This document shows positions 14,762-64,000 of a stretch of 64,000 nucleotides of DNA, piece after piece. Each line of letters starts with the position of its first letter. Position 1 is the stretch's first letter. Source of the stretch: Paragordius varius. Lineage: Eukaryota > Animalia > Nematomorpha. The translations under genes were made by a program, and so were the position numbers. The notes under the pieces were generated by a model. The model searched no databases. It was not told the origin of the DNA and was given only the letters and a program-made list of their open reading frames with translations. The stretch lies in the NCBI GenBank assembly GCA_964247055.1, contig OZ176055.1, forward strand, positions 8,990,001 through 9,054,000, in the 5' to 3' direction.

Positions 14762-26075
<11,314 letters not shown>

Positions 26076-53446: not shown

Positions 53447-55262
53447 ATGGCTCGCATGGATGGTCGAAATTTTAATGAAATAAGGAACTTAAGTTTAAAT
53501 TTTATTTTACCTTGTTTTTAGATATAAAAACCGATATTATAAATGCTGCGAAGGGCTCAGCTTATATGGAACAAGGAAACACCAAAGTTGTTTGCTCTAT
53601 ATTTGGCCCAAAAGAATATATACAAAAACGAAAAGCCTCTGAAAAAATTAACCAAGCTGTTATTGAATGTAACATAAAGTATGCGCCTTTTTACGAAAAA
53701 TCTCAGGATTTGTTGTATAAAAATAATACGACACAAACTTATTCATACTCAAATTTGGTTAAAGAAGCATTAGAACCATATATTAATACAGTACTAATAA
53801 CCTAATTTTTAGTACCAATATCCAAAATCTAAAATTGAAATAAATTTATTGGTTTTGGAGAATGATGGCTCACTTTTGTCCGCATTGATTAATTGTGCAA
53901 GTGTCGCAATCGTTACTGCGGGCATTGAAGTTTTTGATATTCTTTGCTCTTCAACCCTTTTATACACTACAAACGATAATTTACTCGTAGATCCTATCTA
54001 TGATGAGCAAGTAATCTTATAAAATAATTAAACGATATTTTAATGCTGGATAAATACCTTTTTTCATTCAAATTTAACATTTTTTCAACCAAACCCAACA
54101 CCTTTTCGTCCAACTTAACATTTATTTTTAAACTTCCTTATAAGGCTTTATAATTATCAAGTGTTGAGTTATATGTGATAATTCAATAACTAAAAGTTGT
54201 ATCGTACTGATGAGTGCTAAAAAGCTTGGTATTTTCTATTTAGGTTTTCAGTTAGTTTCAGTTTATAGAATGCCCTTTCTTAACCTTTTCAAAACGATTT
54301 TTCAATCCAATGTTTTGAGTTTTTGAGAAACGTTTTAATCGAGAATCCGTTTTCAAAATAACTATGTTTTTTTTAATCAATTCTATTTCAATGTTCAAAT
54401 TTTATTCATTTTTTATAAATGTAAGCTTTTAATTTTTATGATTTGAAACAAATGTTAATGGTAACTGCTTCATTTGATTATTTTTATTTTCAATATATTA
54501 AAGTTTTATTTCGGATCTCGTTTGGCATTATCTAAATTTTTTCAAGCGCCGAAATTATAATTATATAACTTGAAAAATTATATAAATTTAAAGATAAATT
54601 GCTGTATTGTATAAAAAGGTTAACCAAGACTCAATGAATGAATGCATACTAGCGTACATGCCTCAATTAAATCAAATTTCCATGTTGGAATTTCAGGGGT
54701 CATTTGATCAAATAACGTTTCAAAAGGTTTTTTACACAATTGTTTTTATTTTCAATGTGTTTTTTTGATACAAAGGCTGATACCGGAATGATAAGTTGTT
54801 TTTTGAACTGTTATTTTGCTTAGGGTTCTTTAATTTTTAACATATTTTTTTACACGTAGAGCATACAATAAATATATGTAGTTTATGTATGTCTATTTAA
54901 GATTATTATTCACAATGCAAAAAAATTAGAGTATCTGTAAATTAACATTAGGCTTAGATTCACATTTATATGGCCAAAATGGAATTGACCACATTTTTAG
55001 CCAAAATCAATGGTAGGCATTACGTTCAGAACTGTTTTTTAAATATATTTGAAACAAATTGGAGCAAAAAAAAAATTACCATTTTTTATTATTTTTTTAG
55101 ATACTCAATCACACTATGAGTGCGGCAAACAAGATACAGGAATATCTTAAACATATTTGTCATGAATGGATAAATAATAAATGTCCTCAAAAATATTTTT
55201 TTCTTTATAATCGAACAAAATTATATATTTTTATTTTATATATAAGATGTGGCATTTTGTAA
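53447..55262 (+). CDS. EXOSC6: Exosome complex RNase PH-like subunit MTR3 (EXOSC6-like)
   Basis: Exons 53447-53492, 53522-53790, 53813-54010, 54619-54726, 55101-55262; the exon 4 acceptor and the 3' end are uncertain. Motifs AKGSAYMEQGNTKVVCSIFGPKE, KYAPF, EALEP..YPKS, VLENDGS, AGIEVFD, DP, AYMPQLNQIS fit MTR3 better than RRP41. Confidence 0.8.
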
Positions 55263-61799: not shown

Positions 61800-62045
61800 T
61801 TAAAAAGGATTTGATTTTTGGAAAAGTTGAAGGGAAAAGAAAGGAGTACCGATGTTCAGATGGCTGGATACTGTTAAGAAGGAATCTGGTAGATGTATAA
61901 AGGAATTGAAAAAAAATAGCATGGGAAAGAGACAAGTGAAGAGAACTTGTCATTTTAATTTAAAATGGGTCAAACTCAACCTAAGAAACATTTTAATTTA
62001 AAATGGGTCAAACTCGACCTAAGAAATTACCTACCTACCTACCTT
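61800..62045 (+). mobile_element. RTE 3'-end fragment followed by a ~38-bp tandem duplication and ACCT repeats
   Basis: GKVEGKRK..PMFRWLD-like remnant; TTTTAATTTAAAATGGGTCAAACTC(A/G)ACCTAAGAAA occurs twice. Confidence 0.55.
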
Positions 62046-62619
62046 ATCCATAAAATATGAAATATCAAACTTTTTTTATATTTCGACGCATAATTGTTAT
62101 ATGCAAACCTTTGCAATGGTTTCAATTTGTTTCATATTATTCTAAATATTTAATTTTAAACACTCGTGGGCTCCGCAAATTATATTTTCTACTAATTTTC
62201 ACAAAATAGCTTTAATTCTATTTATTTTAACTTTGTTTGCCCAAAATTTTAACATCAAACTTTTATATTATAACTCTGACGTGATAAAATTGAGCATCAT
62301 CAAATTATAGAGAAACCTTGTTTTTATAATATCTTAAGGCGTTATACCATTTCCACCATGCCTCAAAATAGAATGAAGTGCGATTCAACAAAATTTTACT
62401 GAAAATTAAATTTTCGTATATATCGTTTAAAATTATTTTCAGTTTAAATCAAAATTTCGCTTATAATTAAATTTTCTCGCACAATCTCGGCATTTTTGCG
62501 TCTATTTAAAAAAATCTAATATCATAAAAATATTGATTTTTCTTTTTATAGGTAGTTTATGATAGATTTTAGTGATATTTAAAGAAGCTTAGAGCTTCCC
62601 CAAAAAATAAATATCCCAG

Positions 62620-62627
62620 CTCTTCCT
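62620..62627 (+). promoter_or_regulatory. Possible TCT/5'TOP-like start motif upstream of RPS19
   Basis: CTCTTCCT ~290 bp upstream of the ATG; polypyrimidine initiators are typical of ribosomal protein genes. Short motif, weak evidence. Confidence 0.25.
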
Positions 62628-62907
62628 ACCCGTAAACTGGTCTGGACTCTATTTTATAAATATGCATTTATCGAATAAAAAATATATATCTTAAAAACAT
62701 TTATTTATCGATTCGTATGTTTTCGCATCAAAGAGAATACAACATTTTTTTAAAATAATAATATGTTATATATATATATATATATATGCATATAAAAATA
62801 AAATACCATTATATTGTATATTTGAAATTTTAAAAATATGTTGATTTATTTTTATAAAATTATAATTAACACATGGATTTTACAATCTAAACGCTTAAAT
62901 CTTATCC

Positions 62908-63765
62908 ATGCCTGCTGTATCTGTAAAAGACGTAGACCAACAGGAATTCGTTGATGAATTAGCTTCTTTTATCAAAAAGTATGCATTTTAGATCTCTTAC
63001 ATGTATTTTTACATGTTTGGTTTGCAAATTTGCTATAAAATTATGGTTTTAAATTAATGCTTATAAAACCTTTCCATTAATTTAGGAGTGGGAAAATAAA
63101 GCCGCCAGAATTTGCTGAATATGTCAAATTAGGTACTATGAAAGAACTGGCTCCTTATAATGAAGATTGGTATTATGTACGTGCAGGTATAAAAATTTAT
63201 ATTGTAGCATCGATGGCAAGACATTTATATATTCGAACTCCTGCTGGTGTTGGTTCTTTTACCAAAATTTATGGAGGTATATTATGTGTTTGTTAAAATT
63301 ATTTTATAGCCCGTAAAAACAATGGAGTAATGCCAAGTCATTGGGTGCGTGGCTCCTCTTCTATAGCCAGAAAAGTTTTACAATCGCTTGAACAAATGAA
63401 CCTTATTGAAAAAGATAAAGTTAAAGGGTAATACATTTTGCCTATACACTAAAATTAATTATTAAGAATTAAAAGTTATATAATAGACAGATACATTTTA
63501 GTAAACCTTGATTTTTAAATAATTTTATTATTACAGTCATAGAATATGCTTCATTTCTATGCAATATTTTGTAACTAAAAATAGATTATATTTTCAAAAA
63601 ATCAATAAATGTATAATCTTATAAGTTTTACATTTTGTCTCTATAATTTTAACTTTTACTGTATTTAGTGGTCGTAAACTCACAAGTCAAGGGCGAAGAG
63701 ATTTGGACCGAATAGCTAATCAAATTCATAAGAGGAAACATGCAATTGATGTTGAAGATGAATAA
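62908..63765 (+). CDS. RPS19: 40S ribosomal protein S19 (eS19), 151 aa
   Basis: Exons 62908-62978, 63086-63186, 63208-63276, 63310-63427, 63669-63765 give [151 protein letters not shown]. Confidence 0.97.
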
Positions 63766-64000
63766 ATAAATATATCAAATACATCTTTTAAAAATATCTA
63801 TCACGCACAAAAGGGTTAAATGTGTTATTATTCGTTTATAAAATATAATGTGATTAATTATTACATTTTACGTTTGGTGTCTCTTTAATTTTGTTTTCTG
63901 AAAGCTTTTTAGGCAATTTTATATAATTGTATACGTAAACACCGCAACTTATTATAAAATTTAATTATATTTTGCAATATCCTCTTGTTTTACAAGATAC

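Follow-up and report, generated by a model that had tools for sequence, protein, structure and literature searches.

A probable 21-nucleotide spliceosomal intron at a deeply conserved position in the RPS19 gene of the horsehair worm Paragordius varius

A segment of 21 nt that interrupts the gene for ribosomal protein eS19 (RPS19) in the horsehair worm Paragordius varius is most probably, with a likelihood that we put at roughly 0.85, a genuine GT-AG (U2-type) spliceosomal intron that is constitutively spliced. The segment occupies positions 63187-63207 of the forward strand of the window, that is, of the whole 64-kb stretch of DNA that was analyzed, and has the sequence GTATAAAAATTTATATTGTAG. 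It splits codon 58 in phase 1, between the residues YVRA and ASMARH. We favor an intron because of the GT..AG ends of the segment, the intron found at this site in the sister genus Gordionus, the very low G+C content, the lack of any comparable insert in homologous proteins, the location of the junction within helix alpha-3, and the in-frame TAA that the segment carries in another sample.

The spliced product of the five-exon gene, which lies on the + strand at 62908-63765 (Table 1), is a full-length eS19 of 151 amino acids. With the Pfam profile PF01090 (Ribosomal_S19e), for which the gathering score of 29.4 bits was used as the cut-off, the spliced protein scored 183.7 bits over profile positions 1-136 of 137, as compared with 170.4 bits when the 21 nt were retained. 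In solved ribosome structures, the eS19 of rabbit and human matched the spliced protein with an E value of 4e-58, and residues 1-117 align with mammalian eS19 without a gap, the 21-nt junction included. The assignment to RPS19/eS19, which a preliminary description had proposed from the sequence alone, is thus borne out by the profile score and the gapless junction. When checked on the sequence, the 21-mer of that description, its coordinates and phase, its placement after CDS nucleotide 172, and the YVRA/ASMARH junction were all correct. The introns that it listed after nucleotides 71, 172, and 359 are all present, but the 33-nt intron after c.241 had been left out. An in-frame splice of 123 nt (63187 to 63309), by which exon 3 would be skipped, was also considered and rejected; it would remove the invariant segment ASMARHLY...KIYG. 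In an Rfam scan of positions 62000-64000, the introns gave no match to snoRNAs or to any further RNA family.

Table 1. Positions in the window of the RPS19 exons and introns, of the short introns in a second gene, and of the variant within the 21-nt segment
Feature	Position	Strand	Length (nt)	Remarks
RPS19 exon 1	62908-62978	+		CDS nt 1-71; begins with ATG; intron after c.71 in all four mapped orthologues
RPS19 intron 1	62979-63085	+	107	GT..AG; phase 2; after CDS nt 71
RPS19 exon 2	63086-63186	+		CDS nt 72-172
RPS19 intron 2	63187-63207	+	21	GT..AG; phase 1; after CDS nt 172
RPS19 exon 3	63208-63276	+	69	CDS nt 173-241; between the 21-nt and 33-nt introns
RPS19 intron 3	63277-63309	+	33	Phase 1; after CDS nt 241; in-frame TAA
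RPS19 exon 4	63310-63427	+		CDS nt 242-359
RPS19 intron 4	63428-63668	+	241	Phase 2; after CDS nt 359
RPS19 exon 5	63669-63765	+		Includes the TAA stop
MTR3/EXOSC6-like intron	53493-53521		29	In-frame TAG
MTR3/EXOSC6-like intron	53791-53812		22	GT..AG; shifts the frame
Variant in run X4	63192	+		A>T; in-frame AAA to TAA, third codon of the 21-nt segment

The 21-nt intron starts with GTATAA and ends with TTGTAG (5' context CAG/GTATAA, 3' context TTGTAG/C), and no GT..AG pair other than that formed by its ends restores the reading frame. Its G+C content is 14%; that of the other introns of the gene is 15-23%, that of the exons 35-38%, and that of the CDS as a whole 37%, in a window that has a G+C content of about 27% throughout. 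The sole match to yTnAy in the 21 nt is TTTAT, the A of which, at position 63199, is a candidate branch point on the basis of this motif match only; it is position 13 of the intron, 12 nt downstream of the 5' G and 8 nt from the 3' end. Recognition would be expected to proceed by intron definition, with a reduced GTA 5' site, a TAG 3' site and a branch A some 8 nt upstream of the 3' end, for which 63199 is the candidate. Removal of the 21 nt from the mRNA would then leave a message for the normal 151-residue eS19.

The 21-nt intron is not a one-off, in that an MTR3/EXOSC6-like gene in the window contains introns of 22 and 29 nt. In its predicted protein, the match to the RNase_PH profile covers profile positions 7-89 on one side of the 22-nt segment and, in a different frame, positions 93-130 on the other. 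This segment must be removed, because the match runs on across the frame shift. It contains a CTAAT motif, a motif match with its A 7 nt from the intron end. The four micro-introns in the RPS19 and MTR3 genes of the window begin with GTATAA, GTATAT, GTTTAA, and GTACTA. The 21-nt intron is probably one member of a class of micro-introns of 20-33 nt that exist in this genome alongside longer ones. When the window was scanned, irrespective of homology, for short GT..AG segments that join open frames, 322 "obligatory" cases were returned, and seven control dinucleotide pairs returned 277-511; the scan is useless as a census because 322 lies within the control range.

The longest intron of RPS19 has features of its own. 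Intron 4 contains a high-copy stretch of about 42 nt (63626-63667), the end of which lies one base short of the 3' splice AG. In run X1, the word depth over this stretch is about 33,000, as compared with about 670 in its flanks; a similar excess was seen in runs X3, X4, and X6, and many contigs break at both of its edges. It has the appearance of a dispersed high-copy repeat, and no second copy within 3 mismatches was found in the 64-kb window. In addition, intron 4 carries a direct repeat of 15 nt (87% identical), the copies of which (63432-63446 and 63629-63643) are spaced 197 nt apart and lie just within its two ends. Subtraction of 197 nt would shorten the intron to about 44 nt, a length near the 40 nt found for the Gordionus intron at that site, which suggests that intron 4 is a short intron enlarged through insertion or duplication. 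Elsewhere in the window, a frame scan detected a very long stop-free stretch on the + strand at 17207-20080 (up to about 1760 codons), which is probably the polyprotein of a transposon or retroelement.

The protein around the junction is highly conserved. Among the 120 best homologues, not one has residues in the seven columns that an insert would occupy, and the flanking residues are nearly invariant, namely, R56 (120/120), A58 (119/120), S59 (119/120), and R62 (120/120). A retained insert would follow A57 and lie midway along helix alpha-3 (residues 52-67 of the human protein). This helix is the central amphipathic helix of RPS19, belongs to its folding core and is a hot spot of Diamond-Blackfan mutations; A57 and A61 are packed in the core, and basic patch A, required for incorporation into pre-ribosomes, is made up of R56, S59, and R62 (PMC2034476). 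The seven residues GIKIYIV, which read-through of the reference sequence would add, would enter a highly conserved stretch of eS19, as the preliminary description had stated.

We compared the intron positions with those of four annotated orthologues that could be placed exactly on genomic loci, with the hemichordate serving as the deuterostome. In the horsehair worm Gordionus, introns follow CDS nucleotides 71 (169 nt), 172 (39 nt), 238 (38 nt), and 356 (40 nt); in the brachiopod Lingula, 71, 172 (605 nt), 241 (275 nt), and 356; and in the hemichordate Glandiceps, 71, 172 (1655 nt), and 411. The priapulid Priapulus has introns after 71, 241 (5846 nt), and 356 and has lost the c.172 intron. Every c.172 intron, including the one in the window, is in phase 1 and lies between R-A/C and A-S residues. 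The position is ancestral, because Gordionus, Lingula, and Glandiceps also carry a phase-1 intron there; on this comparison, the c.172 intron predates the protostome-deuterostome split, and the position was inherited from the bilaterian ancestor. Human RPS19 has introns after c.71, c.172, and c.356, plus a fourth after c.411. The c.241 position of the 33-nt intron 3 recurs in Gordionus, Lingula, and Priapulus (as the introns of 38, 275, and 5846 nt) and, by the same kind of comparison, is ancient too.

The closest homologue by far is the eS19 of Gordionus sp. m RMFG-2023, with 76% identity; the values for other animals are 70% or lower, and the protein collection contained no near-identical protein of this species, either spliced or with the segment retained. 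Intron 2 of Gordionus montsenyensis RPS19 (L001:3342-3380) resembles the 21-nt intron in its codon, its phase, its GTATA... start, and its TAG end. It is likewise very A/T rich, a multiple of three in length, and stop free, and its read-through would give GIYLFHSYNIYYL. The difference lies in the length, 39 nt versus 21 nt, and all three short RPS19 introns of Gordionus, with 38-40 nt, are of the normal lower size for animals. Exon 4 measures 118 nt both here and in Gordionus, as compared with 115 nt in Lingula and Priapulus; the additional codon (359 instead of 356) is derived and common to the two horsehair worms. They also resemble each other in base composition, with a G+C content of 26.9% in Gordionus and of about 27% in the window, and we regard the window as that of a gordiid-like nematomorph distinct from Gordionus. 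Three evolutionary claims made beforehand are in agreement with these data: that the c.172 position is ancestral (its absence from Priapulus notwithstanding), that the intron has shrunk, as judged by the 39 nt of the nearest sequenced relative, and that one extra codon lies behind position 359, which we located to exon 4 and found to be common to Gordionus.

The reading frame alone cannot decide between an intron and a coding insert, because, in the reference, the 21-nt segment is divisible by three and free of stop codons. According to a simulation with the intron base composition, a 21-nt phase-1 intron is stop free with a probability of 0.49, and the state of the reference is most simply attributed to chance, at about 1/3 x 0.49. 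Natural variation was more informative. Logan contigs assembled independently from the short reads of three runs, representing three samples and two studies, span the site. The contig of run X1 (62886-63300; word depth, 668) and that of run X3, from the other study (62991-63297; word depth, 3.4), show 0 differences from the window, and the contig of run X4, from another sample (63004-63400; word depth, 363), has one substitution and no indel within the intron. Runs X1, X3, X4, and X6 are genomic DNA, with contigs that cover introns, and on this ground we ruled out a reading of their word shares of about 0.35 as exon-only RNA. Runs X7-X11, which carry the same species label and whose RNA status is a guess, contained next to none of the words of the locus. 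A search of sequencing runs for the locus yielded none recorded as RNA, and exact searches of the metagenome collection detected neither the spliced junction nor, separately, the exon sequence immediately upstream of it.

The substitution in X4 (Table 1) creates an in-frame TAA, so that read-through of the 21 nt would stop eS19 at residue 59. The T is present at a depth of 362.8 of 362.8, in one contig of one run, 189 nt from the contig end. Because of this TAA, the open frame is to be regarded as a property of one allele and not as a conserved coding insert; it is not conserved within the species label. The earlier suggestion that the segment is 3n and stop free, and that its retention would evade nonsense-mediated decay, consequently stands for the reference allele but not for the other sample. 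Over the 397 nt compared, X4 differs from the window by 17 substitutions and 2 single-base deletions, with per-base differences of 13% in intron 1 (plus an indel), 9% in intron 3 (32 nt in X4, with two substitutions), and 1.5% in the exons. All of the exonic variant sites in the second X1 haplotype, X3, and X4 are synonymous (13/13); exon 2 of X4 has no variants and exon 3 has three, all synonymous, and, as far as the contig extends, the spliced X4 protein has the same sequence as that of the window. Evolution of the 21 nt as noncoding sequence fits these data, on the basis of a single variant. A T occupies position 6 of the intron in X4, and likewise in Gordionus intron 2 and in RPS19 intron 3, which weakly hints that the stop-free A at 63192 may be the derived state.

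The diversity under this one species label is very high. The window and X4 differ by 4.5% over the 397 nt and by 13% in intron 1, and 119 nt of the second haplotype of X1 contain 6 differences. Either hyper-polymorphism of a single species or the existence of cryptic species would account for this, and the X4 allele, with its 4.5% divergence, may come from a cryptic sister species.

Three other explanations were weighed. The one that survives best, although we consider it unlikely, is that the intron is leaky or regulated, in the sense that it is mostly spliced while a noticeable share of the transcripts retains the 21 nt. Retained transcripts of the stop-free allele would escape nonsense-mediated decay and give rise to some eS19 with a 7-residue insert, and those of the TAA allele would be degraded or truncated. 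This idea draws on the fact that both the reference allele and the orthologous 39-nt intron of Gordionus are 3n and stop free. In Paramecium, stop-free 3n introns form a class that lies beyond policing by nonsense-mediated decay, which also counts in its favor. Furthermore, inefficient splicing is possible for very short introns, with a median of about 25% for microsporidia as cited in PMC13644364. The joint chance of finding both introns 3n and stop free, (1/3 x 0.49) x (1/3 x 0.28), amounts to about 1.5%, but this figure concerns only two introns that were picked post hoc, and a protein with an insert in the invariant core helix is more likely to be waste than a functional isoform.

It is very unlikely that the segment has been exonized and is translated into a 158-residue eS19 with GIKIYIV after A57. 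Although the 21 nt are in frame and stop free in the reference and the retained protein passes the Pfam threshold with its 170.4 bits, the TAA that X4 has as its third codon there, the lack of such an insert in any of the 120 homologues, and the position in the alpha-3 hot spot argue against translation, as do the perfect GT..AG ends, the G+C content of 14%, and the intron at this site in the sister genus. An assembly artifact, namely, a longer intron collapsed to 21 nt, which the preliminary description had named as a possible refutation, or a sequencing error, deserves practically no credence, since the X1, X3, and X4 contigs each give exactly 21 nt at depths of 668, 3.4, and 363, and a collapse is thereby excluded.

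A constitutively spliced intron of 21 nt, our preferred explanation, has to be seen against the sizes known from other animals. In a survey of short introns in 51 animal genomes (Molecular Biology and Evolution, September 2026; PMC13644364), introns of less than 30 nt were found only in myxobolid myxozoans, with medians of 22-27 nt, and in Dicyema japonicum; conserved RPS13 positions were used for validation, and further lineages were predicted. Nematomorphs are not mentioned in that study, and the word "intron" was not found in the nematomorph genome papers among the literature searched. With less assurance than for the intron itself, but still on the favorable side, we propose that horsehair worms represent a third, independent animal lineage with introns below 30 nt, down to 21 nt, in a large and repeat-rich genome, and that the shrinkage is a recent event within the Gordiida, one that can be followed from site to site. 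Such a lineage appears to be unreported so far. Shrinkage within the Gordiida, and a recent one, is proposed because Gordionus keeps 38-40 nt at those sites. It would not be tied to a compact genome, because this relative has a genome of 288 Mb with 64% repeats (G+C content, 26.9%; BUSCO score, 71.6%).

If this is true, a 21-nt intron at an ancestral site of a gene that is universally conserved and highly expressed, in a lineage whose genome is of ordinary size and rich in transposons, would uncouple intron miniaturization from genome compaction, since both animal clades known to have such introns possess reduced genomes. Moreover, 39 nt versus 21 nt at one and the same site in two genera offers a clean comparison for defining the minimum substrate of the animal spliceosome. 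There are also practical consequences. The smallest intron that STAR accepts by default is 21 nt, and gene finders usually demand longer ones. Introns this short thus tend to be missed or read through, which in the present case would lengthen eS19 by 7 residues unnoticed, and read-through of micro-introns that are not a multiple of three would break gene models. Missed micro-introns may add to the low BUSCO scores of hairworms, such as the 71.6% obtained for Gordionus.

The closest parallels are provided by the myxobolids (Henneguya, Thelohanellus, and Myxobolus) and Dicyema japonicum (PMC13644364; PMC6736024), which are parasitic animals with GT-AG introns of about 20-30 nt. As in the gene studied here, their introns lie at conserved sites in housekeeping genes and have conserved exons on both sides, RPS13 being the worked example. 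Their 5' signal is reduced to "GTa," and the introns are A/T rich with little or no polypyrimidine tract; the intron starts in the window resemble these. The horsehair worm differs in belonging to the Nematomorpha within the Ecdysozoa and in having micro-introns beside introns of 107 and 241 nt in one gene. Splicing in the myxobolids and Dicyema is backed by Iso-Seq or RNA-seq, whereas the introns described here are known from genomic sequence. The comparison in the preliminary description with ciliate, nucleomorph, and dicyemid introns, and with an animal minimum well above 21 nt, is a fair one with respect to size, given that myxobolids and Dicyema are the only animals with introns below 30 nt in PMC13644364 and that Paramecium introns average 25 nt according to PMC8997360. 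Among the ciliates, Stentor introns are even shorter, with 15-16 nt as cited in PMC13644364. The ciliates Paramecium and Stentor resemble the horsehair worm in the size of their introns, and they raise the same question as to whether nonsense-mediated decay is evaded by 3n introns that lack stops (PMC8997360; PMC5014332); they differ in that they are unicellular and that nearly all of their introns are tiny. The introns of chlorarachniophyte nucleomorphs fall into a similar size range and again belong to a unicellular lineage in which nearly all introns are tiny. In contrast to the ciliates, tiny and ordinary introns are mixed here in a single animal gene.
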